A DNA stretch of 64,000 nucleotides from Phallusia mammillata (GCA_965637545.1 OZ281499.1:26164001-26228000); one strand, 5' to 3'. Counted from the stretch's first letter, positions 8,286-56,940 are shown. Notes: a model not told the origin generated them from the sequence alone. Numbers and translations are program-made.

Positions 8286-8980
8286 ATGGTAAACTGAACT
8301 CAGTATTATCTGAGTTAAAAATAATTAAAGAGAGCCAACACTTTCTGTCCAAAAAATATGATTTATTGCAAAAAAAACTCAACTTAACTGAAGAAGAAAT
8401 GAAATCTTTAACAAAAGAGAATACAGAGCTAAAGAAGAGCTTAAAAGAAATGCAAAAAGTTGCCGACAACAACAAACAAGCAATAAATTCACTGGAGCAG
8501 TATGGTCGAAGGGACTGTCTTGAATTCAACGGCATTCCTCTTACAGAGTCTGAAAATACAGATGAAATAGTTATGGCAATTGCAAAGCAAGTTGGTGTAC
8601 CCGTAAGTAAACCCGACATAAGCATTTCGCACAGGCTGCCAAACTCAAGATCATCTAACCAAAAGGTCTCACCTACAATAATTGCCAAATTTACTAACCG
8701 AAGACTACGGGATAATATTTTCAAGAATCGGATTAAGCTCCACAATCAAGCATCAGCTGCAACAAATAAATCAAAGATTTACATCAATGAGAGCCTAACC
8801 AAAGAAAATCGTAAACTATTTTATGCATGTCTTCAATTTAAAAAACAATCGGACTACAAGTTTTTATGGACTAGAAATGGAACAATTCTACTCAGGAAAA
8901 ATGAAACAAGCCCTACCATCAGCATCCACAGTGAAAAGGATCTTATCACACACAACATCATCATCCCTGAAAGTACATAA
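8286..8980 (+). CDS. LINE ORF1 lacking its N-terminus (coiled coil plus RRM-like nucleic-acid chaperone)
   Basis: Heptad-rich segment followed by LEQYGRRDCLEFNGIP, ISISHRL, IIAKF, IYINESLT and FLWTRNG, typical of L1-like ORF1 proteins of CR1/L2-group elements. Confidence 0.8.
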
Positions 8981-9268
8981 AGAATCAATATCAGTATGTT
9001 TATTTATTTTTATGCTTTACATAATGTGTTCTTTAATTACTAACTTATTTCCTTTGCCTACCTATACTGTGGATATAATATACACCTATGTTTACACTAG
9101 CCCATATTCTTTAATCAGCCAAAGGTTTGTTCAAACAAACTCAACAAAAAGCTTACCTCCTTCCATAACTTGTCTGCCTTCCCATGCCTTGGGATTTAGC
9201 TACTCCCCACATAAATGGCACTTATTTCCAGTGTTTATCATTAGAACAAAACATTCCAACTACTTCCA

Positions 9269-12165: not shown

Positions 12166-13050
12166 GTTTTTACATGTGTGCCATACTTCTTATCCGCATT
12201 ATTTTTCACGTTACTTTCCAATGCTGTGTGCCTTTCGCTTGTATTCCTCCCGCCAGTTCCCTAGCAACCACGTGTAATGTATGATAACATTTACAAGACC
12301 AATACAGTACATCATTTGCATTACTGTAAACTGTGCACACTGCTCTAGTTTTAATTATCAAAAGACTCCTGCTGTGTGACTATCTTTTTTCCTTTTTGCC
12401 TATTTATCATTATTTCTGTACACGGGTGGCTGACTCGATGACCTATATGGTCCCTTCGCCATCCACCAGTTGCTTGCCTATTATATTTTATTTGCATGCA
12501 ATAACCGCGTACGCAACTGAAAATAAAATGATGATGATGATGATATTCACCTCTACAAGTTTGTAAAATTACAATGTGTTGTTTCATTCTGCACAATATT
12601 TGTCGCCTTTACAATGTGCCACTGCCTCAACCACTGCCAGCAAATGCTGACATAGATTCGCTTTTAGACACAACCACAACAAATGAAATTCATGACTTGC
12701 AAGGTAGTACTGTGAAAGATTCGATTATTTCCACATTCCAATAAAGATGTTTGTGAAATGTTTTTTGTGGTTGTTTATTGCAAAAAGTGGCAACACAGCA
12801 ACACAGAAATGAACTTGAAAAATAGGTAACAGAACACTGAACGAATATGAAAGTCATAAGGTAGGTAAGAATAACAGTGAAGAATAGGAAACTACTGAAG
12901 TAGGGCAATTAAAAACAGTGAACAAGATTGAATAAAACCTTGACAGGCTTGCACAGATTGAAGCCTTTAACCAGCAGTGAAAGTAGTAAATAACAGAAAA
13001 TTGAAAAACACATGCAGAAAAAAGCATACTGTTAAAAATGCATATTAAAT

Positions 13051-13941: not shown

Positions 13942-14033
13942 AATCAATTTACTTTTTTTAAAAACTAAAGCTTACACAATGACTAAACACAAGAATAAAA
14001 TAATTCGGCGTAAAACTTCCAAAACAATGCCGC

Positions 14034-15261
14034 TGAAGCACCAGCCTCCTTAGAGCCTGTTGGGCGGCAGTTATGGTGTCTCAAGGGAATGGATAGATTG
14101 ATGACACAAGATTCTTCTCCGTTAGGACGCAACCACAATGGCCTTGCAGGTGCGGCGTGCGTTAGCGTGATCCACTCAAGTTGCTCACGATTAACCCGTT
14201 GATAGAGTCTCACTGCTTTACTTATTTCGTCTGGGTTGTTGCCGAAACTAGCCTGTTCAAGATCTGTGCTTGCAATTAAGCCTTGGAAGATTTCACACCT
14301 TATCTCCTGCAAACGTCGTCGTAGACCTTCAGCCAGATATTGATCTCGGTCACTTGTGAATTCGACTAAAGAGATCTCTTCCTCCAAAGAACAAGGCTTG
14401 AACTTCAAATCAAACTCTCTATGGTTAGAATTCCAGACAAAGGTTGGAACTGCGTTCTGAACCACAGTTAAACGATTTATCTCACGCTTAGCGACAGCAG
14501 AAAGTTGCAGTGTGTGATCGCGGACACGATTTAATTGTTCTTCGTCCTCCTCACGATTTCTGGATTGTCTGTACTGTCTAGTATAGTTAAAGAGTCTTGA
14601 GAACCTGATGTTTCTATGTCGGAATGAGCCTCTCAAATTCGCACGATTCATCACTATCTCAAATATCAGGCACACACAGAGTTGATTAACACTCTGTATT
14701 CTTGATTATTTGTCTTAAGCGATATCGTTGATTAGCTCTTGGCCAGCTAACCACAGCAGTGAGATAAAACCAAATTTAGCATCCACAAATAGAACCCACA
14801 AATAGAAGGCACAAATAGAACGGCGAAAACATCAAAGTCTACACTTATATAACAATGTGAAACCTTGGCCGGTGTACGAATTCTTTTTCTCATATTCCTT
14901 ATATTATTTATTTTAAGGTAGCCATGTAATTTATAATGCCATAGCGCCTTTTGGTGAACACCATATGCTTTTTCACAGGGTGGAAACGACGCGCTCTAAT
15001 ACGAAACACAACTGCTGAAACATTGCAAATATCGACGGAAACATGTGTCACAATGGAACAAACACTATGTTTACTGTTAGATCTTTCTGGAACCCGAAAA
15101 ATGGCTGAAAATAACTTATGACTACCATAGAAACGGAAATATAAACATTAGTCTATGCAGAAATGAGGGTAAACTTTTCCATTTCGTGGTGTGAAACGTT
15201 ATTGCGAAATAACATGCAATCGTTTTCATAAACATTGCACAATAGTGTTGTAACCGCTACA
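14034..15261 (-). repeat. 3' LTR of Gypsy-1 (1228 bp)
   Basis: Matches 23069-24296 and 32103-33330; starts TGTAGCGG and ends CTTCA on the minus strand. Confidence 0.93.
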
Positions 15262-15266
15262 AAAAG

Positions 15267-15280
15267 CTCCCCCCAAAAAA
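15267..15280 (-). other. Polypurine tract (GGGGGGAG) preceded by a U-tract; second copy near 24302
   Basis: The minus strand reads TTTTTTGGGGGGAGCTTTT immediately before the LTR start TGTAGC. Confidence 0.7.
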
Positions 15281-15639
15281 GGGTGCACAATGTGTTTGAA
15301 TGAAAAACACATTTTATCAATATTAATGGTCGTTAGCGACACGCGACGAGAGAGATTGGTCAATAGATGGCGGTAGGTGCTGTTACGTGGGGATTTATAC
15401 GTTGGGAAAAATATGCACAATTAAAGACGAAAAATGAACATAACAATTATATATCTTGTCAATAAGGGTATGACTCTTCGGCTCTTAGAATAAATATCGT
15501 AAGGAAAATAATAAACGTCGTCAAAACAAGGGTGGAAACAGAGAATATAATGTATAAGTATAGACTGGCGAAACATAATTTGATAAAATTGCACACAAGA
15601 ATGTTTTATCGATTATAATGCGGTTTGATAGCTATGATA

Positions 15640-15646
<7 letters not shown>

Positions 15647-15691
<45 letters not shown>

Positions 15692-15695
15692 TTTT
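15647..15695. repeat. (AT)14-T21 compound microsatellite; (AT)13-T22 in the second unit near 24682-24729
   Basis: Counted directly; accounts for the 1-bp difference in unit period. Confidence 0.9.
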
Positions 15696-16195
15696 ATAAG
15701 TATATGCGATTCTTGTATAAATATATTGCTTTTACACTATTGTTAAAAAGGAATGGGCGGAAAAATACAATGCAAATTCATACAACAAGTAATGTGTGTT
15801 ATTGAAATCTCCACCGGTTTCGAATTTTGAGTTTTTAGCCTTATATACAAGCATTGATTATATATTTTTGTAGTGGAGACACAATAAGGGTTTCTGCACT
15901 TGAATGAGAAAGGCGAAAACAAGGAAATACTTATATATGCAAAAAGAAATTGTCATGCAGAAACAAGGTTAGTAATATTCACGGATTAGATATATATATT
16001 GGTTTCCCTAAGCAAAATTTTGGTTGACTATTCTAGCAGAATGACAAACGTGAAACGTTAAAGTTAATGTGTTGTGGTATGATCAGTCAAACGGCTAGAG
16101 TAATATTACGTTCAGGCTTAGCTGAATGTGTGAAATGTTTAATAGTATAGTGTAACATATGCTGTTCGCTCAGCAACTAGTCTGGGAACAGTATT

Positions 16196-17645
16196 TCAGG
16201 CTTCTGGTTCTGTGTTAATCGCTTCCTGAGACTGACTATTTGTGTCGTCATCATTGTTTTGTTGTTGATGACGTAAATTCCAGTGGCGTTGTAATTCTGC
16301 AACTGCCTGGTTGATTTTTGGTCTTGCTATTGGTTGAATACGTTGAAAAAGATGCTTTAATGTTAACAAGGACAAGGCTATTCCCCAGAACAAAGCTTGG
16401 ATAACGAGGAAGGAGAGGAATGCATTTGCAGCAGGACTGGTCACAGAAGATAAAAGGGTGATGAAAGCTGACTTGAGAAGATTTTGCGGTAGAACCTTGT
16501 CATCAATTCCCCCTTCTGTGGAAAGGTTAGTTTGTGAGTCGAAGAAAACATTCATTCGTTCGTTGTTTAGTTGAGTGCTTGAGAGGACGGCTAGAACGTC
16601 CGATAATGCGCGATTTTCGCTAGGTATATATTTGAGAAGCTGGGCCGCTTCAACGAAATCATAAGATTGAAAAGATTCATTTATCATCTTGATAATAGGA
16701 GAAAGTAGTTGGATATTGGTTTCGACTCTTGCAAGAGTATAATTGACGAATAAGTAATAAGTATTATGAACTTTGAAAGTGAACATTCGGTTGGCCCGAA
16801 ATGTTTCCTTGTAAACTAGGTCTGGGAAAACATTACTCTGGTCATAAAGTTGGTAGGTCTTTTCATCGTTGTTCACGTGGCCATCATGAACTTTTACGAA
16901 AAAAGGCCTTGTAGCAAAGTAATTGCTATTCTTTATTCGCAGACTTCGCAACAAACGCATTTTTGATGTGGTACAAGCGGTCTCTAAGAGTATGTCGCCG
17001 TGCGTTATCGCTGCTATGGGCTTTCCCTTCAGGTAGGATAATATCTGGCTTGGGGAAATATGCGCGCTGGCCCCAGCCAGTAATGCCGTTATTTGTGTAG
17101 ATTGGCATTGAAAGTATAAGATGTCTGACAGCTGTCTTCTAAATGTTTAGGCTGAGTTGTAAATGTAGGACTCAAAAATATCGTTTGTAGACTTGTAAAT
17201 AGTTGGAGCATGTTGCTCGAAATGTCTTTTTGTAGACTTGAAAATAGTTGGAGCTTGTTGCTCGAAATATCTTTTTGTAGACTTGAAAATAGTTGGAGCT
17301 TGTTGCTCGAAATATCTTTTTGTAGACTTGAAAATAGTTGGAGCTTGTTGCTCGAAATATCTTTTTGTAGACTTGAAAATAGTTGGAGCTTGTTGCTCGA
17401 AATATCTTTTTGTAGACTTGAAAATAGTTGGAGCTCGTTGCTCGAAATATCTTTTTGTAGACTTGAAAATAGTTGGAGTTTATTGCTCGAAATATCTTTT
17501 TGTAGACTTGTTGATGGGAACATACATTCATATTGTAGAGTAGGGACGGGTTTACGCAATGCACAACTGAAAATAAGATGTATATACATATGTACAATTT
17601 GTTAACTCGTAGTAGACTAATCAGATTCAACAAGGTAGTCGTCAT
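16196..17645 (-). pseudogene. env: env-like glycoprotein of the gB / class III fusion type, internally deleted and frameshifted, copy 1
   Basis: ATG at 17645 gives a signal-like MTTTLLNLISLLRVNKLYICIYILFSVVHC, then YNMNVCSHQQ. After the 45-bp array a second frame (17146-16196, 316 aa) reads ..[53 protein letters not shown].., with NYT/NES/NLS sequons, one transmembrane helix (~16358-16423) and a C-terminal tail. Confidence 0.75.
17175..17510. repeat. 45-bp tandem array, 7 full units plus a partial one; second copy at 26209-26544
   Basis: GTAGACTTG recurs at 17187, 17232, 17277, 17322, 17367, 17412, 17457 and 17502. Confidence 0.97.
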
Positions 17646-20600
17646 ATCTGCTTGGGCGCTGTGTATTCCTTCTTGGGCGAGCTGGGGCTGCTTGGGCTTC
17701 ATTGGGTAAGACTTCAATGCTTGTGTCTGTCTGACTTTCCTCTGATTGCTCAGGTGGCTGGTCTGCGGTTTGGAAGTCTCGTTCTGGATGAGTGATTTCG
17801 CTTTGTGGTTCTGCCAAGTCGAGTTCTGGATGACTGATTTCATCGTGAGATTGTGCCAAATCGAGATTCGGTTGGCTGATTTCCGTTGCTGGAGTTTGAT
17901 TGTTATAGACTGGAGAGATGTTGTCATCTGTAAGCGGTTGCGGGAGATCAAAGGAACAGGAGGGCGTTTCTTGTTGTGGACTGGAGTGGGAGATCGTCTC
18001 ATTTTCGGTGAGTGATTGGTCTATCTTTTCTTCTGTCTCTAAAGAAGTTGAATTATTGTCATCTAACTGCTGTTGCTCATTAGTCGCATTAGTGCAGCTT
18101 GTTAGTGGCTGAGCTAGAGAATCTGGCGATTCTAAAAAATCTGGAACAAAATCAAGTAAACGCTCTGCAGGTTTCAAACGATTTAAAGAAACAACGTAAG
18201 GTTTGCCGTGACGCATTATTGTATAGTATTTAGCTCTGCGTTGCAAGACTTCAAAAGGGCCGGTATAAGCACCGTCTAAAGGAGCTTTTCTAGCATCTGT
18301 TCGCATAAACACATGGCTGCAACTGTATAGTCGCGGGTCCATGAAGGTCTCTTGGTTGTGAAGGAGCCGTGTTGGTGTATACTTGAATTGGTTGAAATAT
18401 CTTCTTTGTGCTCGCAGAAATTCACCCGAAGGAGAGGCACTAGATGGATCCGGTGGATTTATACAAGTTCCAGGTAATCTCATTTGTTGTCCCCACATGA
18501 TTTCGGAGCTGGATGCCCCCAAGTCGTCATTGTGTGTTGCGTTTAATGCCAGGACGGCTAAAGGTAGGGCGTAGTACCAATCACCTTTTTCTGCTAGGCT
18601 GCGTAAAGCACGTTTTATGTTTCTGTTCTTTCGTTCGACTGCGCCGTTCGCGTTGGCGCAATAAGCTGACGTAGTGAAATGTTGAATATTCAAGAAGTTC
18701 ATGGCCTGTTGCCATTCCTCATTAGTAAACGAGGAGCCTCTGTCTGATGATAGATAGGAAGGCGTCCCATAAACACTCACGTAATTGTATAGAAACGCAT
18801 TTATTATGGTAGAAGTTTTAGCATCTTTTAATGGTACCGCCACAATATGTCTTGTGAACCGGTCAACCATGACCAAAATGTGACAATGGCCGTTAGAATC
18901 ATTCAACTTTCCAATTAGATCAATGTTAATGTGCTGGCCTTTCTGACTTACGGGAGGATAACGTTGAAAGGGCGTCTTCACATGACGAATTACTTTAGTA
19001 CGCTGGCAAACCTGGCATGAACGTGACCACGTGACTACATCGCGTTTTAATCCCGGCCAGACAAACCGTTTAGCCACTAATTTGACTGTTGGTTTTACTC
19101 CAGGATGGCTCAAGTTGTGGATCAAGTCATAGGCGAGCTTCCTGTAACCTGGCGGAAGAAGAGGGCGAGGTGATCCCGGAATGCTCTCATCACAAATAAG
19201 TTTGAGGTTGCTGTTTGGTAAGTTGTGTAATTTTAAGTTTAAAGAATGTTCAGCAGAATTGCAAAAGGCTTGCAAGTCACTGTCATTGGCCTGAGCCTTA
19301 GCTATCGTCTCATAGTCTAGCTTGTTTGCATGGTGGTAAATGGCATTAATGCTTGACCTTGATAAACAATCAGCTACTGTATTTTTAGCGCCTGGCAAAT
19401 ATTCAATGTCAGAAGTGAACTCTGAAATGAAGGCAAGAGCACGAGCTTGTCGTCTGTTAGCGATGTCCCTTCCTGTTACTATAGCAGAACATAAGGGGCG
19501 ATGGTCGGTGTAAATCTTGAAATTACATCCTTCTAAGTAATGCCTGAAATTTTTGAGTGCGATTACAATCGCCGTGAGCTCTCGGTCGAATGTACTGTAT
19601 TTTCTTTCAGTTTTTGAGAACGTTTTCGAAAAGAAAGCCAAAGGTTGTACCTTTCCTTCAAAAGATTGATGCAACACTGCACCCATGGCCACATCCGAAG
19701 CATCTGTGGTGAGTGAAAGTTGTGCTTTTGCGTTAGGAAAAGCTAATTCAGTTTGTTGGATAAGAAGTTCTTTTGCTCGTTCAAATGCTTTTTGTGCCTC
19801 TGGTGGCCAATTGACTCTGCTATTGTTCCGTCTGTTGCCTTTTAATAGGTCATATATGGGAGCTAGCACGCCTGATATGTTAGGTAAATGTGCCGCATAA
19901 AAGTTTATCATTCCACAAAAGCGACGGACTTGTTTAACTGTAGTTGGTCTTGGAAAATCCGTGATAGCTTGTACCTTTGATGGGATAGGTCTGATCCCAG
20001 TTGGCGCTATGAGGTGGCCCAGGAAAGTTATCTGCGCACGGCCAAATTGGCATTTTGCAGGGTTTATGTACAAGCCAAAATCACTGAGGCGCTGGAAAAC
20101 CTGTTTAAGATGCTCTAAGTGTTCTTCCTCATTCTTTGAGTAAATTAATAAATCGTCAACGTATCCAGTCACATTAGTTAAGCCTTCCAGAGCCATATCA
20201 AGCAATTGGGACATGAAACTCGCGCTATTCACTAAACCCATCGGTAACCTCTGGTACACAAAACAACCAACGGGGGTCCGAATTGCTGTTCTGGGTTGAT
20301 GTTCCTCCGCGATTTTTATCTGATAAAAAGCTTCCTTCAAATCGACTTTACTGAATATTTTGCATCCATGTAGAGCAATAAATGATTGACTTAGGCGCGG
20401 CATTGGATAGTTTGTCTTTTCCGTGCAGCTGTTCAAGACACGGGCATCTGAGACAATTCGCAAATCTTCTGTGCCTTTTTTAGCCACTAAGTGGATGGCC
20501 ATGCCAAATTGAGATTGCGCTCTTCTGAGAATGCCTCGTCTACACATGTCTTCAAGTTGCTTCTTCATGCGATCAAAATATTCCGGGCGGACTCGCCTAG

Positions 20601-22362
20601 CCTTTTGTACTGCTGGCATCCGGTGAAGCGGAATTCTGGCCACTATCGGATGCTTGGGCTCACGGTGATAATTTGGGACAGCAGTTATCTCGGGAAATTT
20701 CGCTAACAGGTCAGTATATTTTTTGTTGTGCAGGACTGGGGCTTGAAGCAGCAATTGGTTGTCTTTTGGGCTTATGCTAACCTGCTTTCCAGTAGTGTTG
20801 CATTTCAAAAACCCGCCTTGTGGATTCAAACTTAGATTTTGTGCCTGTAAAAAGTCAAAACCTAAAATAGGATAGGAGATTTCAACTTGATCAAATTCTA
20901 CTTCAACAGGACCAAAACCAATATCGACCGTCTGTAATGACTTTCCAAAACACTGTATAGGCTGACCAGATACTGTAGTATATTTGCTCATCTCCTTTTG
21001 TGGTTTCAGACCTGCTTTGGCTGGGATAAAGCTTCCTGCGCTGCCGCTGTCAATCAAAAACTCCGTATTAGAAAGCACATCTTTGACACGAGGTAAGTTC
21101 TTGTCTATTGTTTGAATAGCATTCAGAGTTTGTCTTGGTATTGCAATCTGTAACCCTTCATGATATTTTGGGCATGGAGGACCATAACATTTGAAAGCTT
21201 TGTCCTTGTAGCGTTCATGTATGTAGCAAAGGTTTGGTGGATTAGGATTTTGACGTCCAGGGCGGTATTCCTGGTTCGCTTGAGTGAATTGAGGGTTTCT
21301 TTCATGCTGTGGACGAGTGTCTGTTGGAATGTATTCTGGCCTTTGCTGCTGTTTAGGGGGTCCCCAGAAACGCGGTTGATTGAATTGTTGGTTTCGCTGG
21401 AATTGCTGCTGGTTGTAATAGTTTTGACGGCTATAATTTCCTTGAAAACGCGGTGGAAATTGATTGTTTTGTTGAAAATTTGGTCGTCTATTGTCATTTT
21501 GAAATCGCTGGTTTGAGTAGCGTTGCTGACGGAAAGGTTGCTGTCCCCTGGACATATGTGTTAAGACTTCATCTAATTTTGCTGAAAGTTGTGTTACTTC
21601 AGAGTTTTTTCCATCTTGTGTTGGCTTATTATCGCTGAAATCGCCGGCAACATAACGGTCATAGTATTTTGCCATGTCCATAAGAGTGTCAAATTTCGTA
21701 GCTCTTATTAGCGGTCTGACATGAGTGGGAAGTAGATTTAAGAATGTGTTTTCCACTAGTTCTTTTATGGTTGGGTCATCTGACACTTTTCTGGGACAAA
21801 CAGATAATAATTTTTGTAGCAACTCAAAGGCTGATTCATTGTTGGGGTCGAAAGTTATATCATTCATTAACTGGATCCAAGAGGATTTTCCACCACTTTG
21901 CAGCTGTGAAATCATTAAGTCTTTAATTGAATCATAAGGTTTCTCAGAGTCTGAGGCTTGAACAATAGCAGAACGAAACTTGTCTGTCTGTTTGTCATTG
22001 AAACTGGTTATCAACAGCGAAAAGCGTGCGTTATCATCTATGACCTTGTTTGTGTCAAAGAAGTTATCTAAAACCTTGAAGTAAGTTTTAATATCTTTTT
22101 TATGAGACCATAATGGTGGGATTTTCAACACAGACATACGCATTGTGTCTAATTCTTGGTGTAGAATGTTAGTAGACATATTAGTAACTGGAACAACAAA
22201 TTTTGCAGAACCGCATAATGCTGGTCCGCTTAAATTCTGAGATGCGCGGTCAGACTGTGTTGGTGCTATGTCGTCATTAGTTAAGTCATTTCCTGACAGC
22301 TGTTGTTGTTGACTTGCTTCAAAGATACTGGCAGATTCATCAGAGTTACTGGCAGTTGCCAT
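17617..22362 (-). CDS. gag-pol: Gypsy-1 gag-pol polyprotein in a single open frame, apparently intact
   Basis: First ATG at 22362 (the track starts at GTG 22389). Gag PPLW and CHCC knuckle CYIHERYKDKAFKCYGPPC; protease FLIDSG; RT YVDD; RNase H TDAS..ELTA; integrase HHCC, D-D-E and GPF. Confidence 0.96.
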   Translation of the reverse strand: MATASNSDESASIFEASQQQQLSGNDLTNDDIAPTQSDRASQNLSGPALCGSAKFVVPVTNMSTNILHQELDTMRMSVLKIPPLWSHKKDIKTYFKVLDNFFDTNKVIDDNARFSLLITSFNDKQTDKFRSAIVQASDSEKPYDSIKDLMISQLQSGGKSSWIQLMNDITFDPNNESAFELLQKLLSVCPRKVSDDPTIKELVENTFLNLLPTHVRPLIRATKFDTLMDMAKYYDRYVAGDFSDNKPTQDGKNSEVTQLSAKLDEVLTHMSRGQQPFRQQRYSNQRFQNDNRRPNFQQNNQFPPRFQGNYSRQNYYNQQQFQRNQQFNQPRFWGPPKQQQRPEYIPTDTRPQHERNPQFTQANQEYRPGRQNPNPPNLCYIHERYKDKAFKCYGPPCPKYHEGLQIAIPRQTLNAIQTIDKNLPRVKDVLSNTEFLIDSGSAGSFIPAKAGLKPQKEMSKYTTVSGQPIQCFGKSLQTVDIGFGPVEVEFDQVEISYPILGFDFLQAQNLSLNPQGGFLKCNTTGKQVSISPKDNQLLLQAPVLHNKKYTDLLAKFPEITAVPNYHREPKHPIVARIPLHRMPAVQKARRVRPEYFDRMKKQLEDMCRRGILRRAQSQFGMAIHLVAKKGTEDLRIVSDARVLNSCTEKTNYPMPRLSQSFIALHGCKIFSKVDLKEAFYQIKIAEEHQPRTAIRTPVGCFVYQRLPMGLVNSASFMSQLLDMALEGLTNVTGYVDDLLIYSKNEEEHLEHLKQVFQRLSDFGLYINPAKCQFGRAQITFLGHLIAPTGIRPIPSKVQAITDFPRPTTVKQVRRFCGMINFYAAHLPNISGVLAPIYDLLKGNRRNNSRVNWPPEAQKAFERAKELLIQQTELAFPNAKAQLSLTTDASDVAMGAVLHQSFEGKVQPLAFFSKTFSKTERKYSTFDRELTAIVIALKNFRHYLEGCNFKIYTDHRPLCSAIVTGRDIANRRQARALAFISEFTSDIEYLPGAKNTVADCLSRSSINAIYHHANKLDYETIAKAQANDSDLQAFCNSAEHSLNLKLHNLPNSNLKLICDESIPGSPRPLLPPGYRKLAYDLIHNLSHPGVKPTVKLVAKRFVWPGLKRDVVTWSRSCQVCQRTKVIRHVKTPFQRYPPVSQKGQHINIDLIGKLNDSNGHCHILVMVDRFTRHIVAVPLKDAKTSTIINAFLYNYVSVYGTPSYLSSDRGSSFTNEEWQQAMNFLNIQHFTTSAYCANANGAVERKNRNIKRALRSLAEKGDWYYALPLAVLALNATHNDDLGASSSEIMWGQQMRLPGTCINPPDPSSASPSGEFLRAQRRYFNQFKYTPTRLLHNQETFMDPRLYSCSHVFMRTDARKAPLDGAYTGPFEVLQRRAKYYTIMRHGKPYVVSLNRLKPAERLLDFVPDFLESPDSLAQPLTSCTNATNEQQQLDDNNSTSLETEEKIDQSLTENETISHSSPQQETPSCSFDLPQPLTDDNISPVYNNQTPATEISQPNLDLAQSHDEISHPELDLAEPQSEITHPERDFQTADQPPEQSEESQTDTSIEVLPNEAQAAPARPRRNTQRPSRYDDYLVESD

Positions 22363-22528
22363 ATTAGATTTGCTTCTAGTATTGTACACGTGGGCTGACT
22401 TTTTATGTGCAGGCGTAGATTTTCCCTTTGATTTGGCCTTTGAACCCTGACCTAGCGTGACTGAGCGAACTATTTTTGACAGTGTGAATGTTGTGTTTTT
22501 AACTTAGTGTGGGAAAACGTTTGAGTCC

Positions 22529-22876
22529 CTATAGAAACGGTTGAAACCAGACCAAACCAATATATATATATAAGAGCAACAAATGTTAGTATTGCAGAAC
22601 AGAAAAACGTTTCCGGCTTAGACAAAGCCGCTCTTGTGAAACGTGAAATTAAATGTAATCAGAAAAACACACAGGCTGTATTGCATGCGCTATTTGATTG
22701 TTAACTTGACACAAGTTCCTTTACTTTAAGATTTATAATTAAATTAGAATGAATGTATATACACAAAATGATTATTGCTTGAACAAAGCTTCAATCAAAA
22801 TCAATTTTATCACACAACGTTTAAAATGTCTGAAAATCGTTAGGATTCAAGTGCAGAAAATGCTGCGCACACTTAC
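22529..22876 (-). other. Candidate 348-nt intron in the Gypsy-1 leader; second copy at 31563-31910
   Basis: Donor GTAAGT at 22876 directly after the ORF0 stop codon, TACTAAC at 22591-22585, then a pyrimidine-rich tract and TAG acceptor at 22529. Confidence 0.55.
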
Positions 22877-23686
22877 TTAAGCAAGGGTTATGAAATCCGA
22901 TGACGCGAATGCGTAGATGTGAATGGATTGTACCAGGTATTCCAGATGCTGTGGCACTTCGTCGTCTGATTCCCACGATGACTCAACAGCCTCGTAGATG
23001 ACCAAAACGTCGGCTTGCTCGGGAAACGAGCTTGGCAAGTTCGAACCTCTGGGATAGGGGTACCAGTTTGAAGCACCAGCCTCCTTAGAGCCTGTTGGGC
23101 GGCAGTTATGGTGTCTCAAGGGAATGGATAGATTGATGACACAAGATTCTTCTCCGTTAGGACGCAACCACAATGGCCTTGCAGGTGCGGCGTGCGTTAG
23201 CGTGATCCACTCAAGTTGCTCACGATTAACCCGTTGATAGAGTCTCACTGCTTTACTTATTTCGTCTGGGTTGTTGCCGAAACTAGCCTGTTCAAGATCT
23301 GTGCTTGCAATTAAGCCTTGGAAGATTTCACACCTTATCTCCTGCAAACGTCGTCGTAGACCTTCAGCCAGATATTGATCTCGGTCACTTGTGAATTCGA
23401 CTAAAGAGATCTCTTCCTCCAAAGAACAAGGCTTGAACTTCAAATCAAACTCTCTATGGTTAGAATTCCAGACAAAGGTTGGAACTGCGTTCTGAACCAC
23501 AGTTAAACGATTTATCTCACGCTTAGCGACAGCAGAAAGTTGCAGTGTGTGATCGCGGACACGATTTAATTGTTCTTCGTCCTCCTCACGATTTCTGGAT
23601 TGTCTGTACTGTCTAGTATAGTTAAAGAGTCTTGAGAACCTGATGTTTCTATGTCGGAATGAGCCTCTCAAATTCGCACGATTCAT
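22877..23686 (-). CDS. ORF0: 269-aa protein of unknown function starting inside the LTR and crossing the PBS
   Basis: ATG at 23686 (GTG at 23710), open to TAA at 22877, with an Arg-rich N-terminus. Identical copy at 31911-32720. The 3' LTR version (13983-14651) runs into flanking DNA. Confidence 0.65.
   Translation of the reverse strand: MNRANLRGSFRHRNIRFSRLFNYTRQYRQSRNREEDEEQLNRVRDHTLQLSAVAKREINRLTVVQNAVPTFVWNSNHREFDLKFKPCSLEEEISLVEFTSDRDQYLAEGLRRRLQEIRCEIFQGLIASTDLEQASFGNNPDEISKAVRLYQRVNREQLEWITLTHAAPARPLWLRPNGEESCVINLSIPLRHHNCRPTGSKEAGASNWYPYPRGSNLPSSFPEQADVLVIYEAVESSWESDDEVPQHLEYLVQSIHIYAFASSDFITLA
23057..23065 (-). other. Candidate primer-binding site TGGTACCCC; second copy at 32091-32099
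   Basis: Begins with TGG 3 nt after the LTR end. The 9 nt resemble the 3' end of a tRNA-Arg(CCU) as I recall it; the tRNA identity is uncertain. Confidence 0.55.
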
Positions 23687-24296
23687 CACTATCTCAAATA
23701 TCAGGCACACACAGAGTTGATTAACACTCTGTATTCTTGATTATTTGTCTTAAGCGATATCGTTGATTAGCTCTTGGCCAGCTAACCACAGCAGTGAGAT
23801 AAAACCAAATTTAGCATCCACAAATAGAACCCACAAATAGAAGGCACAAATAGAACGGCGAAAACATCAAAGTCTACACTTATATAACAATGTGAAACCT
23901 TGGCCGGTGTACGAATTCTTTTTCTCATATTCCTTATATTATTTATTTTAAGGTAGCCATGTAATTTATAATGCCATAGCGCCTTTTGGTGAACACCATA
24001 TGCTTTTTCACAGGGTGGAAACGACGCGCTCTAATACGAAACACAACTGCTGAAACATTGCAAATATCGACGGAAACATGTGTCACAATGGAACAAACAC
24101 TATGTTTACTGTTAGATCTTTCTGGAACCCGAAAAATGGCTGAAAATAACTTATGACTACCATAGAAACGGAAATATAAACATTAGTCTATGCAGAAATG
24201 AGGGTAAACTTTTCCATTTCGTGGTGTGAAACGTTATTGCGAAATAACATGCAATCGTTTTCATAAACATTGCACAATAGTGTTGTAACCGCTACA
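23069..24296 (-). repeat. Shared central LTR of Gypsy-1
   Basis: A PBS lies on one side and a PPT on the other; same length and termini as the outer LTRs. Confidence 0.93.
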
Positions 24297-24674
24297 AAAA
24301 GCTCCCCCCAAAAAAGGGTGCACAATGTGTTTGAATGAAAAACACATTTTATCAATATTAATGGTCGTTAGCGACACGCGACGAGAGAGATTGGTCAATA
24401 GATGGCGGTAGGTGCTGTTACGTGGGGATTTATACGTTGGGAAAAATATGCACAATTAAAGACGAAAAATGAACATAACAATTATATATCTTGTCAATAA
24501 GGGTATGACTCTTCGGCTCTTAGAATAAATATCGTAAGGAAAATAATAAACGTCGTCAAAACAAGGGTGGAAACAGAGAATATAATGTATAAGTATAGAC
24601 TGGCGAAACATAATTTGATAAAATTGCACACAAGAATGTTTTATCGATTATAATGCGGTTTGATAGCTATGATA

Positions 24675-24724
<50 letters not shown>

Positions 24725-25229
24725 TTTTTATAAGTATATGCGATTCTTGTATAAATATATTGCTTTTACACTATTGTTAAAAAGGAATGGGCGGAAAAAT
24801 ACAATGCAAATTCATACAACAAGTAATGTGTGTTATTGAAATCTCCACCGGTTTCGAATTTTGAGTTTTTAGCCTTATATACAAGCATTGATTATATATT
24901 TTTGTAGTGGAGACACAATAAGGGTTTCTGCACTTGAATGAGAAAGGCGAAAACAAGGAAATACTTATATATGCAAAAAGAAATTGTCATGCAGAAACAA
25001 GGTTAGTAATATTCACGGATTAGATATATATATTGGTTTCCCTAAGCAAAATTTTGGTTGACTATTCTAGCAGAATGACAAACGTGAAACGTTAAAGTTA
25101 ATGTGTTGTGGTATGATCAGTCAAACGGCTAGAGTAATATTACGTTCAGGCTTAGCTGAATGTGTGAAATGTTTAATAGTATAGTGTAACATATGCTGTT
25201 CGCTCAGCAACTAGTCTGGGAACAGTATT

Positions 25230-26679
25230 TCAGGCTTCTGGTTCTGTGTTAATCGCTTCCTGAGACTGACTATTTGTGTCGTCATCATTGTTTTGTTGTT
25301 GATGACGTAAATTCCAGTGGCGTTGTAATTCTGCAACTGCCTGGTTGATTTTTGGTCTTGCTATTGGTTGAATACGTTGAAAAAGATGCTTTAATGTTAA
25401 CAAGGACAAGGCTATTCCCCAGAACAAAGCTTGGATAACGAGGAAGGAGAGGAATGCATTTGCAGCAGGACTGGTCACAGAAGATAAAAGGGTGATGAAA
25501 GCTGACTTGAGAAGATTTTGCGGTAGAACCTTGTCATCAATTCCCCCTTCTGTGGAAAGGTTAGTTTGTGAGTCGAAGAAAACATTCATTCGTTCGTTGT
25601 TTAGTTGAGTGCTTGAGAGGACGGCTAGAACGTCCGATAATGCGCGATTTTCGCTAGGTATATATTTGAGAAGCTGGGCCGCTTCAACGAAATCATAAGA
25701 TTGAAAAGATTCATTTATCATCTTGATAATAGGAGAAAGTAGTTGGATATTGGTTTCGACTCTTGCAAGAGTATAATTGACGAATAAGTAATAAGTATTA
25801 TGAACTTTGAAAGTGAACATTCGGTTGGCCCGAAATGTTTCCTTGTAAACTAGGTCTGGGAAAACATTACTCTGGTCATAAAGTTGGTAGGTCTTTTCAT
25901 CGTTGTTCACGTGGCCATCATGAACTTTTACGAAAAAAGGCCTTGTAGCAAAGTAATTGCTATTCTTTATTCGCAGACTTCGCAACAAACGCATTTTTGA
26001 TGTGGTACAAGCGGTCTCTAAGAGTATGTCGCCGTGCGTTATCGCTGCTATGGGCTTTCCCTTCAGGTAGGATAATATCTGGCTTGGGGAAATATGCGCG
26101 CTGGCCCCAGCCAGTAATGCCGTTATTTGTGTAGATTGGCATTGAAAGTATAAGATGTCTGACAGCTGTCTTCTAAATGTTTAGGCTGAGTTGTAAATGT
26201 AGGACTCAAAAATATCGTTTGTAGACTTGTAAATAGTTGGAGCATGTTGCTCGAAATGTCTTTTTGTAGACTTGAAAATAGTTGGAGCTTGTTGCTCGAA
26301 ATATCTTTTTGTAGACTTGAAAATAGTTGGAGCTTGTTGCTCGAAATATCTTTTTGTAGACTTGAAAATAGTTGGAGCTTGTTGCTCGAAATATCTTTTT
26401 GTAGACTTGAAAATAGTTGGAGCTTGTTGCTCGAAATATCTTTTTGTAGACTTGAAAATAGTTGGAGCTCGTTGCTCGAAATATCTTTTTGTAGACTTGA
26501 AAATAGTTGGAGTTTATTGCTCGAAATATCTTTTTGTAGACTTGTTGATGGGAACATACATTCATATTGTAGAGTAGGGACGGGTTTACGCAATGCACAA
26601 CTGAAAATAAGATGTATATACATATGTACAATTTGTTAACTCGTAGTAGACTAATCAGATTCAACAAGGTAGTCGTCAT
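25230..26679 (-). pseudogene. env: env-like gene, copy 2, with the same lesions
   Basis: Offset +9034 from copy 1, with identical translations in the ORF track. Confidence 0.75.
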
Positions 26680-29600
26680 ATCTGCTTGGGCGCTGTGTAT
26701 TCCTTCTTGGGCGAGCTGGGGCTGCTTGGGCTTCATTGGGTAAGACTTCAATGCTTGTGTCTGTCTGACTTTCCTCTGATTGCTCAGGTGGCTGGTCTGC
26801 GGTTTGGAAGTCTCGTTCTGGATGAGTGATTTCGCTTTGTGGTTCTGCCAAGTCGAGTTCTGGATGACTGATTTCATCGTGAGATTGTGCCAAATCGAGA
26901 TTCGGTTGGCTGATTTCCGTTGCTGGAGTTTGATTGTTATAGACTGGAGAGATGTTGTCATCTGTAAGCGGTTGCGGGAGATCAAAGGAACAGGAGGGCG
27001 TTTCTTGTTGTGGACTGGAGTGGGAGATCGTCTCATTTTCGGTGAGTGATTGGTCTATCTTTTCTTCTGTCTCTAAAGAAGTTGAATTATTGTCATCTAA
27101 CTGCTGTTGCTCATTAGTCGCATTAGTGCAGCTTGTTAGTGGCTGAGCTAGAGAATCTGGCGATTCTAAAAAATCTGGAACAAAATCAAGTAAACGCTCT
27201 GCAGGTTTCAAACGATTTAAAGAAACAACGTAAGGTTTGCCGTGACGCATTATTGTATAGTATTTAGCTCTGCGTTGCAAGACTTCAAAAGGGCCGGTAT
27301 AAGCACCGTCTAAAGGAGCTTTTCTAGCATCTGTTCGCATAAACACATGGCTGCAACTGTATAGTCGCGGGTCCATGAAGGTCTCTTGGTTGTGAAGGAG
27401 CCGTGTTGGTGTATACTTGAATTGGTTGAAATATCTTCTTTGTGCTCGCAGAAATTCACCCGAAGGAGAGGCACTAGATGGATCCGGTGGATTTATACAA
27501 GTTCCAGGTAATCTCATTTGTTGTCCCCACATGATTTCGGAGCTGGATGCCCCCAAGTCGTCATTGTGTGTTGCGTTTAATGCCAGGACGGCTAAAGGTA
27601 GGGCGTAGTACCAATCACCTTTTTCTGCTAGGCTGCGTAAAGCACGTTTTATGTTTCTGTTCTTTCGTTCGACTGCGCCGTTCGCGTTGGCGCAATAAGC
27701 TGACGTAGTGAAATGTTGAATATTCAAGAAGTTCATGGCCTGTTGCCATTCCTCATTAGTAAACGAGGAGCCTCTGTCTGATGATAGATAGGAAGGCGTC
27801 CCATAAACACTCACGTAATTGTATAGAAACGCATTTATTATGGTAGAAGTTTTAGCATCTTTTAATGGTACCGCCACAATATGTCTTGTGAACCGGTCAA
27901 CCATGACCAAAATGTGACAATGGCCGTTAGAATCATTCAACTTTCCAATTAGATCAATGTTAATGTGCTGGCCTTTCTGACTTACGGGAGGATAACGTTG
28001 AAAGGGCGTCTTCACATGACGAATTACTTTAGTACGCTGGCAAACCTGGCATGAACGTGACCACGTGACTACATCGCGTTTTAATCCCGGCCAGACAAAC
28101 CGTTTAGCCACTAATTTGACTGTTGGTTTTACTCCAGGATGGCTCAAGTTGTGGATCAAGTCATAGGCGAGCTTCCTGTAACCTGGCGGAAGAAGAGGGC
28201 GAGGTGATCCCGGAATGCTCTCATCACAAATAAGTTTGAGGTTGCTGTTTGGTAAGTTGTGTAATTTTAAGTTTAAAGAATGTTCAGCAGAATTGCAAAA
28301 GGCTTGCAAGTCACTGTCATTGGCCTGAGCCTTAGCTATCGTCTCATAGTCTAGCTTGTTTGCATGGTGGTAAATGGCATTAATGCTTGACCTTGATAAA
28401 CAATCAGCTACTGTATTTTTAGCGCCTGGCAAATATTCAATGTCAGAAGTGAACTCTGAAATGAAGGCAAGAGCACGAGCTTGTCGTCTGTTAGCGATGT
28501 CCCTTCCTGTTACTATAGCAGAACATAAGGGGCGATGGTCGGTGTAAATCTTGAAATTACATCCTTCTAAGTAATGCCTGAAATTTTTGAGTGCGATTAC
28601 AATCGCCGTGAGCTCTCGGTCGAATGTACTGTATTTTCTTTCAGTTTTTGAGAACGTTTTCGAAAAGAAAGCCAAAGGTTGTACCTTTCCTTCAAAAGAT
28701 TGATGCAACACTGCACCCATGGCCACATCCGAAGCATCTGTGGTGAGTGAAAGTTGTGCTTTTGCGTTAGGAAAAGCTAATTCAGTTTGTTGGATAAGAA
28801 GTTCTTTTGCTCGTTCAAATGCTTTTTGTGCCTCTGGTGGCCAATTGACTCTGCTATTGTTCCGTCTGTTGCCTTTTAATAGGTCATATATGGGAGCTAG
28901 CACGCCTGATATGTTAGGTAAATGTGCCGCATAAAAGTTTATCATTCCACAAAAGCGACGGACTTGTTTAACTGTAGTTGGTCTTGGAAAATCCGTGATA
29001 GCTTGTACCTTTGATGGGATAGGTCTGATCCCAGTTGGCGCTATGAGGTGGCCCAGGAAAGTTATCTGCGCACGGCCAAATTGGCATTTTGCAGGGTTTA
29101 TGTACAAGCCAAAATCACTGAGGCGCTGGAAAACCTGTTTAAGATGCTCTAAGTGTTCTTCCTCATTCTTTGAGTAAATTAATAAATCGTCAACGTATCC
29201 AGTCACATTAGTTAAGCCTTCCAGAGCCATATCAAGCAATTGGGACATGAAACTCGCGCTATTCACTAAACCCATCGGTAACCTCTGGTACACAAAACAA
29301 CCAACGGGGGTCCGAATTGCTGTTCTGGGTTGATGTTCCTCCGCGATTTTTATCTGATAAAAAGCTTCCTTCAAATCGACTTTACTGAATATTTTGCATC
29401 CATGTAGAGCAATAAATGATTGACTTAGGCGCGGCATTGGATAGTTTGTCTTTTCCGTGCAGCTGTTCAAGACACGGGCATCTGAGACAATTCGCAAATC
29501 TTCTGTGCCTTTTTTAGCCACTAAGTGGATGGCCATGCCAAATTGAGATTGCGCTCTTCTGAGAATGCCTCGTCTACACATGTCTTCAAGTTGCTTCTTC

Positions 29601-31396
29601 ATGCGATCAAAATATTCCGGGCGGACTCGCCTAGCCTTTTGTACTGCTGGCATCCGGTGAAGCGGAATTCTGGCCACTATCGGATGCTTGGGCTCACGGT
29701 GATAATTTGGGACAGCAGTTATCTCGGGAAATTTCGCTAACAGGTCAGTATATTTTTTGTTGTGCAGGACTGGGGCTTGAAGCAGCAATTGGTTGTCTTT
29801 TGGGCTTATGCTAACCTGCTTTCCAGTAGTGTTGCATTTCAAAAACCCGCCTTGTGGATTCAAACTTAGATTTTGTGCCTGTTAAAAGTCAAAACCTAAA
29901 ATAGGATAGGAGATTTCAACTTGATCAAATTCTACTTCAACAGGACCAAAACCAATATCGACCGTCTGTAATGACTTTCCAAAACACTGTATAGGCTGAC
30001 CAGATACTGTAGTATATTTGCTCATCTCCTTTTGTGGTTTCAGACCTGCTTTGGCTGGGATAAAGCTTCCTGCGCTGCCGCTGTCAATCAAAAACTCCGT
30101 ATTAGAAAGCACATCTTTGACACGAGGTAAGTTCTTGTCTATTGTTTGAATAGCATTCAGAGTTTGTCTTGGTATTGCAATCTGTAACCCTTCATGATAT
30201 TTTGGGCATGGAGGACCATAACATTTGAAAGCTTTGTCCTTGTAGCGTTCATGTATGTAGCAAAGGTTTGGTGGATTAGGATTTTGACGTCCAGGGCGGT
30301 ATTCCTGGTTCGCTTGAGTGAATTGAGGGTTTCTTTCATGCTGTGGACGAGTGTCTGTTGGAATGTATTCTGGCCTTTGCTGCTGTTTAGGGGGTCCCCA
30401 GAAACGCGGTTGATTGAATTGTTGGTTTCGCTGGAATTGCTGCTGGTTGTAATAGTTTTGACGGCTATAATTTCCTTGAAAACGCGGTGGAAATTGATTG
30501 TTTTGTTGAAAATTTGGTCGTCTATTGTCATTTTGAAATCGCTGGTTTGAGTAGCGTTGCTGACGGAAAGGTTGCTGTCCCCTGGACATATGTGTTAAGA
30601 CTTCATCTAATTTTGCTGAAAGTTGTGTTACTTCAGAGTTTTTTCCATCTTGTGTTGGCTTATTATCGCTGAAATCGCCGGCAACATAACGGTCATAGTA
30701 TTTTGCCATGTCCATAAGAGTGTCAAATTTCGTAGCTCTTATTAGCGGTCTGACATGAGTGGGAAGTAGATTTAAGAATGTGTTTTCCACTAGTTCTTTT
30801 ATGGTTGGGTCATCTGACACTTTTCTGGGACAAACAGATAATAATTTTTGTAGCAACTCAAAGGCTGATTCATTGTTGGGGTCGAAAGTTATATCATTCA
30901 TTAACTGGATCCAAGAGGATTTTCCACCACTTTGCAGCTGTGAAATCATTAAGTCTTTAATTGAATCATAAGGTTTCTCAGAGTCTGAGGCTTGAACAAT
31001 AGCAGAACGAAACTTGTCTGTCTGTTTGTCATTGAAACTGGTTATCAACAGCGAAAAGCGTGCGTTATCATCTATGACCTTGTTTGTGTCAAAGAAGTTA
31101 TCTAAAACCTTGAAGTAAGTTTTAATATCTTTTTTATGAGACCATAATGGTGGGATTTTCAACACAGACATACGCATTGTGTCTAATTCTTGGTGTAGAA
31201 TGTTAGTAGACATATTAGTAACTGGAACAACAAATTTTGCAGAACCGCATAATGCTGGTCCGCTTAAATTCTGAGATGCGCGGTCAGACTGTGTTGGTGC
31301 TATGTCGTCATTAGTTAAGTCATTTCCTGACAGCTGTTGTTGTTGACTTGCTTCAAAGATACTGGCAGATTCATCAGAGTTACTGGCAGTTGCCAT
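26651..31396 (-). pseudogene. gag-pol: Gypsy-1 gag-pol, copy 2, with a nonsense codon in the protease
   Basis: Position 29883 is T where 20849 is A, turning TTA (Leu) into TAA after GFDF. Confidence 0.9.
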
Positions 31397-31910
31397 ATTA
31401 GATTTGCTTCTAGTATTGTACACGTGGGCTGACTTTTTATGTGCAGGCGTAGATTTTCCCTTTGATTTGGCCTTTGAACCCTGACCTAGCGTGACTGAGC
31501 GAACTATTTTTGACAGTGTGAATGTTGTGTTTTTAACTTAGTGTGGGAAAACGTTTGAGTCCCTATAGAAACGGTTGAAACCAGACCAAACCAATATATA
31601 TATATAAGAGCAACAAATGTTAGTATTGCAGAACAGAAAAACGTTTCCGGCTTAGACAAAGCCGCTCTTGTGAAACGTGAAATTAAATGTAATCAGAAAA
31701 ACACACAGGCTGTATTGCATGCGCTATTTGATTGTTAACTTGACACAAGTTCCTTTACTTTAAGATTTATAATTAAATTAGAATGAATGTATATACACAA
31801 AATGATTATTGCTTGAACAAAGCTTCAATCAAAATCAATTTTATCACACAACGTTTAAAATGTCTGAAAATCGTTAGGATTCAAGTGCAGAAAATGCTGC
31901 GCACACTTAC

Positions 31911-32720
31911 TTAAGCAAGGGTTATGAAATCCGATGACGCGAATGCGTAGATGTGAATGGATTGTACCAGGTATTCCAGATGCTGTGGCACTTCGTCGTC
32001 TGATTCCCACGATGACTCAACAGCCTCGTAGATGACCAAAACGTCGGCTTGCTCGGGAAACGAGCTTGGCAAGTTCGAACCTCTGGGATAGGGGTACCAG
32101 TTTGAAGCACCAGCCTCCTTAGAGCCTGTTGGGCGGCAGTTATGGTGTCTCAAGGGAATGGATAGATTGATGACACAAGATTCTTCTCCGTTAGGACGCA
32201 ACCACAATGGCCTTGCAGGTGCGGCGTGCGTTAGCGTGATCCACTCAAGTTGCTCACGATTAACCCGTTGATAGAGTCTCACTGCTTTACTTATTTCGTC
32301 TGGGTTGTTGCCGAAACTAGCCTGTTCAAGATCTGTGCTTGCAATTAAGCCTTGGAAGATTTCACACCTTATCTCCTGCAAACGTCGTCGTAGACCTTCA
32401 GCCAGATATTGATCTCGGTCACTTGTGAATTCGACTAAAGAGATCTCTTCCTCCAAAGAACAAGGCTTGAACTTCAAATCAAACTCTCTATGGTTAGAAT
32501 TCCAGACAAAGGTTGGAACTGCGTTCTGAACCACAGTTAAACGATTTATCTCACGCTTAGCGACAGCAGAAAGTTGCAGTGTGTGATCGCGGACACGATT
32601 TAATTGTTCTTCGTCCTCCTCACGATTTCTGGATTGTCTGTACTGTCTAGTATAGTTAAAGAGTCTTGAGAACCTGATGTTTCTATGTCGGAATGAGCCT
32701 CTCAAATTCGCACGATTCAT
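31911..32720 (-). CDS. ORF0 from the 5' LTR
   Basis: Identical translation to 22877-23686. Confidence 0.65.
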   Translation of the reverse strand: MNRANLRGSFRHRNIRFSRLFNYTRQYRQSRNREEDEEQLNRVRDHTLQLSAVAKREINRLTVVQNAVPTFVWNSNHREFDLKFKPCSLEEEISLVEFTSDRDQYLAEGLRRRLQEIRCEIFQGLIASTDLEQASFGNNPDEISKAVRLYQRVNREQLEWITLTHAAPARPLWLRPNGEESCVINLSIPLRHHNCRPTGSKEAGASNWYPYPRGSNLPSSFPEQADVLVIYEAVESSWESDDEVPQHLEYLVQSIHIYAFASSDFITLA

Positions 32721-33330
32721 CACTATCTCAAATATCAGGCACACACAGAGTTGATTAACACTCTGTATTCTTGATTATTTGTCTTAAGCGATATCGTTGA
32801 TTAGCTCTTGGCCAGCTAACCACAGCAGTGAGATAAAACCAAATTTAGCATCCACAAATAGAACCCACAAATAGAAGGCACAAATAGAACGGCGAAAACA
32901 TCAAAGTCTACACTTATATAACAATGTGAAACCTTGGCCGGTGTACGAATTCTTTTTCTCATATTCCTTATATTATTTATTTTAAGGTAGCCATGTAATT
33001 TATAATGCCATAGCGCCTTTTGGTGAACACCATATGCTTTTTCACAGGGTGGAAACGACGCGCTCTAATACGAAACACAACTGCTGAAACATTGCAAATA
33101 TCGACGGAAACATGTGTCACAATGGAACAAACACTATGTTTACTGTTAGATCTTTCTGGAACCCGAAAAATGGCTGAAAATAACTTATGACTACCATAGA
33201 AACGGAAATATAAACATTAGTCTATGCAGAAATGAGGGTAAACTTTTCCATTTCGTGGTGTGAAACGTTATTGCGAAATAACATGCAATCGTTTTCATAA
33301 ACATTGCACAATAGTGTTGTAACCGCTACA
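32103..33330 (-). repeat. 5' LTR of Gypsy-1
   Basis: Followed by the PBS on the minus strand; its outer end abuts the TSD CCGC. Confidence 0.93.
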
Positions 33331-33636
33331 CCGCCAATGCATAGATACTACATACCCAAGATATAAAGCAAATTTCTATGTTTCTCTGTGAACCAATTAG
33401 ATATTGAGTTGTCACTATGCGCCGCTAGTGGTAGCGGTACACTTGTCGAGATTTTGCAGACAGCTTAGTGTAGCTTTAGTTAAATAAAGTTTGTTTCAGT
33501 CAAATTTTATGCTTATTGTATCGTGTAATGTAGTATAATACAGTGACAACAACTATAGCGCGGTAATAACCAACTAAAACTGTTTCAAATTCTTCATTGC
33601 AGTGAATAAAAAGTCTATATTCCTAAAACAGATTTC

Positions 33637-41648: not shown

Positions 41649-41695
41649 GACTGTGAGTTGATTTATAGCTAGCCTACAAATCCAGCATCAATAGC

Positions 41696-56844: not shown

Positions 56845-56940
56845 AATCAATTTACTTTTTTAAAAACTAAAGCTTACACAATGACTAAACACAAGAATAA
56901 AATAATTCGGCGTAAAACTTCCAAAACAATGCCGCCAATG

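Follow-up and report, generated by a model that had tools for sequence, protein, structure and literature searches.

The 64,000-nt stretch of the Phallusia mammillata genome analyzed here (GCA_965637545.1, OZ281499.1:26164001-26228000; the whole stretch is referred to below as the window) carries on its minus strand a long terminal repeat (LTR) retrotransposon of the Ty3/gypsy group with an additional open reading frame (ORF), designated ORF0, which starts inside the LTR, continues past the end of the LTR and through the primer binding site (PBS) and terminates upstream of gag. Self-comparison of the window revealed that the element is present as a tandem LTR-internal-LTR-internal-LTR array (Table 1) with a period of 9034/9035 nt, whose two units are 99.98% identical (one mismatch and one single-base length difference in self-BLAST). 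The three LTR copies, each of 1228 nt and with TG...CA termini, are 100% identical to one another. The array is flanked on both sides by a 4-bp target-site duplication (CCGC), and a single CCGC is found at the corresponding empty site of a ~99% identical paralogous segment within the window; thus, the ends of the insertion are exact. The features placing the element in the Ty3/gypsy group include the identical TG...CA LTRs, the target-site duplication, the PBS, a polypurine tract, and gag followed by reverse transcriptase (RT), RNase H and integrase. With no difference among the LTRs and only two positions at which the units diverge, the tandem array is the product of a very recent event, e.g., unequal recombination or tandem integration.

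ORF0 of the downstream unit extends from an ATG at 23686 to a stop codon at 22879-22877, with the part at 23686-23069 encoded by the LTR, and its stop codon is located 515 nt before a separate gag-pol. The array contains two complete copies of ORF0 and a truncated one, the latter situated in the last LTR, where the LTR codons run into the flanking DNA. Because ORF0 spans the unique 5' (U5) part of the LTR and the PBS, the complete protein is encoded only by copies that are headed by a 5' LTR and its leader. The initial annotation, made from the sequence alone, had proposed a 269-aa ORF reading from inside the LTR across its end and the PBS, complete only in the 5' LTR copy, and preceded on the coding strand by a TATATAA motif (23886-23880); the coordinates and codon counts bear out all of these points, although the tandem layout had been overlooked. 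The Arg-rich N-terminus quoted there was also recovered: residues 1-45 are strongly basic [isoelectric point (pI) of 11.5], and the last third of the protein has an acidic pI of 4.7. The middle of the protein is predicted to be helical with a short hairpin, and no membrane segment was found in ORF0 (maximum Kyte-Doolittle 19-residue score of 1.14). Among 5000 first-order Markov simulations of the composition-matched 1935-nt LTR plus leader, the longest ATG-initiated ORF had a mean length of 76 aa and a maximum of 215 aa, and none (0/5000) reached 269 aa. ORF0 is therefore not a chance product, and its reality beyond chance expectation is confirmed.

Table 1. Features of the tandem Ty3/gypsy array, of ORF0 and of its leader within the window.
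Feature	Position	Strand	Basis or remarks
Tandem Ty3/gypsy array, LTR-internal-LTR-internal-LTR	14034..33330	-	self-BLAST
First LTR, heading the upstream unit as its 5' LTR	32103..33330	-	sequence identity
Middle LTR, serving the downstream unit as 5' LTR and the upstream unit as 3' LTR	23069..24296	-	1228 nt, TG...CA
Last LTR, closing the downstream unit as its 3' LTR	14034..15261	-	sequence identity
Target-site duplication CCGC	14030..14033; second copy 33331-33334; empty site 56932-56935	.
Polypurine tract, abutting the middle LTR on its upstream side	24297..24315	-	G6AG core
TATATAA, candidate core promoter	23880..23886	-	putative transcription start near 23856
AUG 23817, upstream ORF of 11 codons	23782..23817	-	-3 T, +4 C; weak
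AUG 23686, ORF0 of 269 codons and stop	22877..23686	-	-3 G, +4 A; moderate; 206 codons in LTR, 63 in PBS and leader
Second complete ORF0 copy, identical to the first	31911..32720	-
Shortened ORF0 in the last LTR, ATG 14651	13983..14651	-	206 LTR codons, then 16 flank-derived codons
PBS, within ORF0	23048..23065	-	begins TGGTACCCC, 3 nt past LTR end
GTAAGT, candidate splice donor	22871..22876	-	immediately 3' of ORF0 stop codon
ATG desert	22363..23683	-	1 ATG in 1321 nt (all frames), 19.3-19.4 expected
AUG 22686, 22-codon ORF between ORF0 and gag	22618..22686	-	-3 C, +4 C; weak; sole ATG of the desert
AUG 22362, gag-pol of the downstream unit	17617..22362	-	-3 A, +4 G; optimal; uninterrupted, 1581 codons from first ATG
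gag-pol of the upstream unit	26651..31396	-	one interruption
ORF3 (254 aa), 3' of pol	16196..16960; second copy 25230-25994	-	C-terminal membrane helix; "env" of the initial annotation

The region separating the ORF0 start codon from gag is almost completely cleared of ATG (the ATG desert of Table 1). In the 807 nt following the start codon no ATG occurs in any frame, compared with 11.65 expected (0/3000 simulations were as low), and the 514 nt between the ORF0 stop codon and the gag ATG contain one, compared with 7.7 expected (P = 0.003). Over the desert as a whole, ATG is the most depleted of the 64 trinucleotides (z = -4.3), whereas the reverse complement CAT occurs at expectation (26 vs. 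24.4), and thus the depletion is specific to the sense strand. The LTR part resembling the unique 3' (U3) region (24296-23856, 441 nt) contains 13 ATG triplets, with 8.8 expected, and the ATG density drops directly downstream of TATATAA, before the ORF0 ATG is reached, which suggests a transcription start near 23856. Between this position and the gag ATG (22362) only three ATG triplets remain, at 23817, 23686 (ORF0) and 22686. Together with the start of gag-pol, their contexts follow the order weak, moderate, weak and strong, in agreement with the context rule and with the precedent of rice tungro bacilliform virus (RTBV; PMC5902531). On the basis of the ATG desert and of the graded AUG contexts, we argue that transcription probably begins upstream of the ORF0 start codon and that translation of ORF0 is probably intended. 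That ORF0 is wanted, as opposed to accidentally tolerated, is argued chiefly from its AUG, which opens a frame of 269 codons and is the sole one with a purine at position -3 retained in an otherwise purged leader.

The composition of ORF0 shows that ATG is avoided by codon choice, with the affected dipeptides still present: all 10 Asn, His, Asp or Tyr codons preceding a codon that starts with G end in C, compared with 15/36 elsewhere, and none of the codons preceding Cys or Trp ends in A. There is no internal Met in the protein. By the codon usage of the retroelement genes of the window [gag-pol and a long interspersed nuclear element (LINE) ORF], the ORF0 frame is the best of the six.

In a word-index protein search, ORF0 gave a single match, a P. 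mammillata protein (CAB3267959.1/A0A6F9DXU7; hereafter P0001), which is also 269 aa long and aligns with ORF0 without gaps (89% identity, 94% similarity), sharing its first Met and last residue and likewise having no internal Met. Since P0001 includes the residues encoded by the PBS and leader, its source is an element copy that has both a 5' LTR and a leader, rather than a host gene or a solo LTR. The 29 differences between the two proteins are distributed as follows: 16/60 in residues 1-60, 3/110 in residues 61-170, 4/36 in residues 171-206 and 6/63 in residues 207-269. Relative to residues 1-60, residues 61-170 thus show a tenfold lower frequency of differences (Fisher test, 5e-6). An embryonic transcriptome of P. 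mammillata has been assembled in peptide space, with the longest peptide retained for each transcript; its peptides were named by their best Ciona robusta BLAST match and the transcripts were deposited in ENA (PMC7237864). We infer that P0001 originates from this set; if so, RNA spanning the whole of ORF0 exists in embryos.

From these observations we favor, with a probability of roughly 0.55, the interpretation that a very young ascidian Ty3/gypsy element possesses in ORF0 a genuine, lineage-specific leader gene and that the full-length RNA of the element would be bicistronic by means of leaky scanning. Transcription would start ~30 nt after TATATAA, and the 11-codon upstream ORF (uORF), with its weak context, would be bypassed by most of the scanning ribosomes. 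A fraction of them would initiate at the moderate ORF0 AUG and produce a 269-aa protein composed of a basic N-terminal arm, a strongly conserved center (residues 61-170) and an acidic tail, while the remaining ribosomes would scan through ~1.3 kb of ATG-cleared RNA and initiate at the optimal AUG of gag-pol.

Several observations weigh against this interpretation. ORF0 shows a weak three-base periodicity (chi-square p = 0.044), the corresponding values being p = 8.5e-7 for the first 807 nt of gag and p = 8e-5 for ORF3. The codon-choice result is a logical consequence of the absence of ATG, and an ATG-poor leader is, on its own, expected for any scanned 5' untranslated region. The LTR contains only two canonical poly(A) signals, AATAAA at 23947 (shortly after another TATA-like motif, TATAAA at 23970) and ATTAAA at 23570 (within ORF0), and their positions do not fix the boundaries of the repeat (R) and U5 regions. 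The single-sequence AlphaFold model of ORF0 is unconfident [predicted local distance difference test (pLDDT) of 36.7], and a HMMER search of 1.84 billion representative proteins yielded no relative beyond Phallusia. One related element was retrieved (L003; 39% pol identity, the same DUF7041 gag, LTRs of 492 nt), in which gag begins 25 nt past the LTR and which has no leader ORF corresponding to ORF0. Finally, a pipeline retaining the longest peptides, if it is the source of P0001, is biased towards intact frames.

The other matches obtained in the searches were not informative. The second HMMER match to ORF0, a HYR-domain protein, was rejected as spurious and repeat-driven. Scans of viral contigs gave only two chance matches of 21% identity and those of metagenome contigs gave none; no match to ORF0 was found in Pfam, NCBIfam or PDB sequences, and no similarity to the gag-pol and ORF3 of the element itself. 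Because ORF0 is located in sequence that L003 does not have, it looks lineage-specific, as far as this comparison of elements can indicate. The second, unrelated gypsy element of the window (see below) has no ORF0 homolog either.

An appreciable minority chance is left to the explanation that ORF0 is a long uORF on the genomic RNA, perhaps translated but with a functionless peptide, which either diverts some of the ribosomes (setting the level of gag-pol, or clearing or occupying the U5-PBS region) or is a recent by-product of a leader cleared of ATG. The weak periodicity, the orphan status of ORF0, its unconfident fold and the fact that L003 manages without it would all fit such a uORF, and scanning to gag suffices to explain the ATG desert. 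A regulatory uORF, however, needs no 269 open codons, a length that the simulations never produced, and would not account for the retention of length, start and stop in P0001 despite 29 residue differences. The tenfold better conservation of residues 61-170 relative to residues 1-60, and the purine-context AUG remaining in the purged leader, also speak against this explanation.

It is improbable that the open frame is incidental to the R, U5, PBS and packaging-leader functions of this region, with transcription starting downstream of the ATG or the AUG being unused, and with the conservation reflecting cis-acting RNA or DNA signals. It is true that the best-conserved stretch of ORF0 lies within the LTR, where cis signals are expected, that the periodicity of the LTR-encoded part is weak (p = 0.15), and that the transcript ends are made uncertain by TATAAA at 23970 and by where the poly(A) signals lie. 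Yet P0001 is annotated as a complete coding sequence, running from the same Met to the same stop, so that its RNA extends over the ATG, the end of the LTR, the PBS and the leader, and ATG triplets already become scarcer upstream of the ORF0 start, immediately past TATATAA. Folding of the RNA around the PBS is not unusual (z = -0.19), no Rfam family was matched within the element, and cis signals leave the frame-specific absence of stop codons unexplained, since TAA is enriched overall in the region.

It is very improbable that ORF0 was captured as a fragment of a host gene or is such a gene in domesticated form, as suggested by the name "zinc finger protein 26" that P0001 bears in nr and UniRef and by the acquisition of extra ORFs known for LTR retrotransposons: neither protein contains a zinc-finger motif or a Pfam domain (ORF0 has no C2H2 or CCHC pattern and only four Cys in total), no cellular homolog was found among the 1.84 billion representative proteins, the PBS- and leader-encoded residues of P0001 point to an element copy, and the name was transferred from a best BLAST match if P0001 belongs to the transcriptome set of PMC7237864. 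The name was accordingly rejected, and this misleading database entry can be corrected: P0001 is the leader ORF of an LTR retrotransposon.

Splicing of ORF0 into gag was considered but is not supported, as the candidate donor GTAAGT is placed beyond the stop codon of ORF0, which is also where P0001 terminates. Ahead of ORF3 (about 17050-16960), the 148 nt preceding its ATG contain no ATG, and pyrimidine-rich AG sites are present there. A spliced RNA carrying ORF0 followed by ORF3, with ORF3 likewise reached by leaky scanning, is conceivable from this arrangement.

The closest precedents for the proposed leader gene are sORF1 and sORF2 of the Drosophila MDG1 group (412, Mdg1, Stalker, Blood and Tabor), which are sense accessory ORFs located upstream of gag; they are carried by the unspliced full-length LTR-to-LTR transcript, their peptides have been detected, and sORF1 is nuclear (bioRxiv 10.1101/2025.03.14.642691). 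They share with ORF0 the Ty3/gypsy context and the sense orientation upstream of gag, the transcription start of ORF0 being a putative one. As judged from their descriptions, sORF1 and sORF2 are shorter insect ORFs (~110 and ~70 aa) situated after the LTR, whereas the 269-aa ORF0 starts inside the LTR; no ATG desert has been reported for the MDG1 ORFs, in contrast to the leader carrying ORF0. Moreover, sORF2 is a membrane fusogen-like protein with a transmembrane segment and a polybasic region, and ORF0 has no membrane segment. Accessory ORFs upstream of gag are therefore already known in gypsy elements, and ORF0 adds a variant whose start lies inside the LTR. If the nuclear sORF1 of the 412 element is taken as a guide, the ORF0 protein might be a nucleic-acid-binding or nuclear regulatory helper of the element, an assignment made with low confidence. 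The role proposed in the initial annotation, in RNA binding, transactivation or anti-silencing, draws no support from the Pfam, NCBIfam and PDB-sequence searches or from the AlphaFold model.

For the proposed mode of translation, the nearest parallel is RTBV, in which scanning over 900 nt is enabled by a lack of AUG inside ORFs I and II and by start contexts that are weak or moderate (PMC5902531). RTBV and badnaviruses have long upstream ORFs free of internal AUG in every frame, weak or moderate upstream starts and a main ORF reached by continued scanning, and the same three sequence features extend over 1.3 kb in the window. These viruses are, however, plant pararetroviruses (Caulimoviridae) without LTRs, in which ribosome shunting precedes ORF I; the likeness involves no homology, and the mechanism proposed for the window is read from its sequence only.

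Coding sequence overlapping an LTR is also found in other retroelements. The GAG frame of Ty1 begins in the 5' LTR. In Ty1 of Saccharomyces cerevisiae the PBS lies within this coding frame (PMC4974528), as it does in ORF0, but the Ty1 frame is gag itself, in a Ty1/copia element, and ORF0 is an extra ORF placed before gag-pol. Passages of two publications on plant and rotifer LTR retrotransposons describe lineage-specific extra ORFs, some of them upstream of gag-pol and mostly of unknown function, and these passages mention none that starts inside an LTR and crosses the PBS (PMC7264820, PMC5408684). Those ORFs occur in other hosts and, as far as these accounts indicate, have no known sequence relation to ORF0.

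The initial annotation had compared ORF0 with sag of mouse mammary tumor virus (MMTV) and nef of human immunodeficiency virus (HIV). Both genes overlap the U3 region of the 3' LTR, downstream of env. The likeness consists in extra coding capacity overlapping the LTR, and the analogy does not hold beyond this point, since ORF0 is located downstream of the TATA box in the 5' LTR, in its presumably transcribed R/U5 part, and upstream of gag; neither sag nor nef appeared as a named match in the Pfam and PDB-sequence searches with ORF0.

The remaining genes of the element are gag-pol and ORF3. The polyprotein contains the following Pfam domains: (i) DUF7041 (gag; residues 99-169), (ii) RVT_1 (636-792), (iii) RNase H (861-991), and (iv) integrase (1079-1243). 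The closest relatives of its pol part are gypsy polyproteins with 38-42% identity, and no relatives of the gag part were found in the word-index protein search. ORF3 had been labeled "env" in the initial annotation. Envelope genes of metazoan gypsy elements, including those of tunicates, have been described as being of the glycoprotein F or glycoprotein B type; ORF3 is a protein of 254 aa in which only the C-terminal membrane helix is confidently modeled, and it gave no family match, the large protein sets not having been searched with it. The env label is thus unsupported, which makes the claim of a four-gene complex retroelement an overstatement; ORF3 may be another kind of membrane protein. 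A 45-nt tandem repeat (7.5 copies, 96% match) is present at 17176-17510 (and at 26210-26544), extending from just 3' of the pol stop codon towards ORF3, and a looser 42-nt repeat occurs at 17774-17883, within the acidic proline-rich tail of pol.

The PBS shows a further difference between the related elements. It begins with TGGTACCCC in the window element (23057-23065) and with TGGTGCCCC in L003 (5979-5987), and the Cys of P0001 at the codon matching the PBS implies a G at this position too, as in L003. The element copies of the window may therefore carry one mismatch to the primer tRNA. In a search intended to name this tRNA, no tRNA gene was found in the 64-kb window.

Positions 1-41067 and 46748-64000 of the window represent two ~99% identical copies (A and B, respectively) of one long segment, the gypsy array and one additional insertion (about 8286-12539) being found in copy A and missing from copy B. 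This insertion contains a LINE-type ORF (9269-11830) encoding endonuclease and RT; the ORF before it (8258-8980) has a baculovirus FP-like domain. Both paralogous segments contain a second, unrelated Ty3/gypsy element on the minus strand (36311-41650 and 59239-64000), whose pol shows 37% identity to that of the element described above and is split into several ORFs. Both also contain a 234-aa ORF (7338-8042 and 54500-55204) with a weak match, below the Pfam cut-off, to DDE_Tnp_4 (Harbinger-type transposase).

If ORF0 is a leader gene reached by leaky scanning, the 1.3-kb strand-specific ATG desert would constitute a clean sequence signature of this process in an animal retrotransposon. Overlap of the ORF0 frame with U5 and the PBS means that constraints of protein, reverse transcription and translation share the same bases. 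A bolder and fairly unlikely scenario is that a tunicate Ty3/gypsy element evolved, probably de novo within its R-U5-leader region, a regulator of element RNA or of host silencing with an Arg-rich arm, together with pararetrovirus-like leaky scanning to gag-pol. If true, the element would be a "complex" metavirus with an extra gene written across the LTR end and the PBS. Extra genes of LTR retrotransposons have recently been a source of new biology, e.g., the cell-to-cell transfer proteins of the MDG1 group, and ORF0, being an orphan with weak coding periodicity, may exemplify the birth of a gene inside a mobile element.

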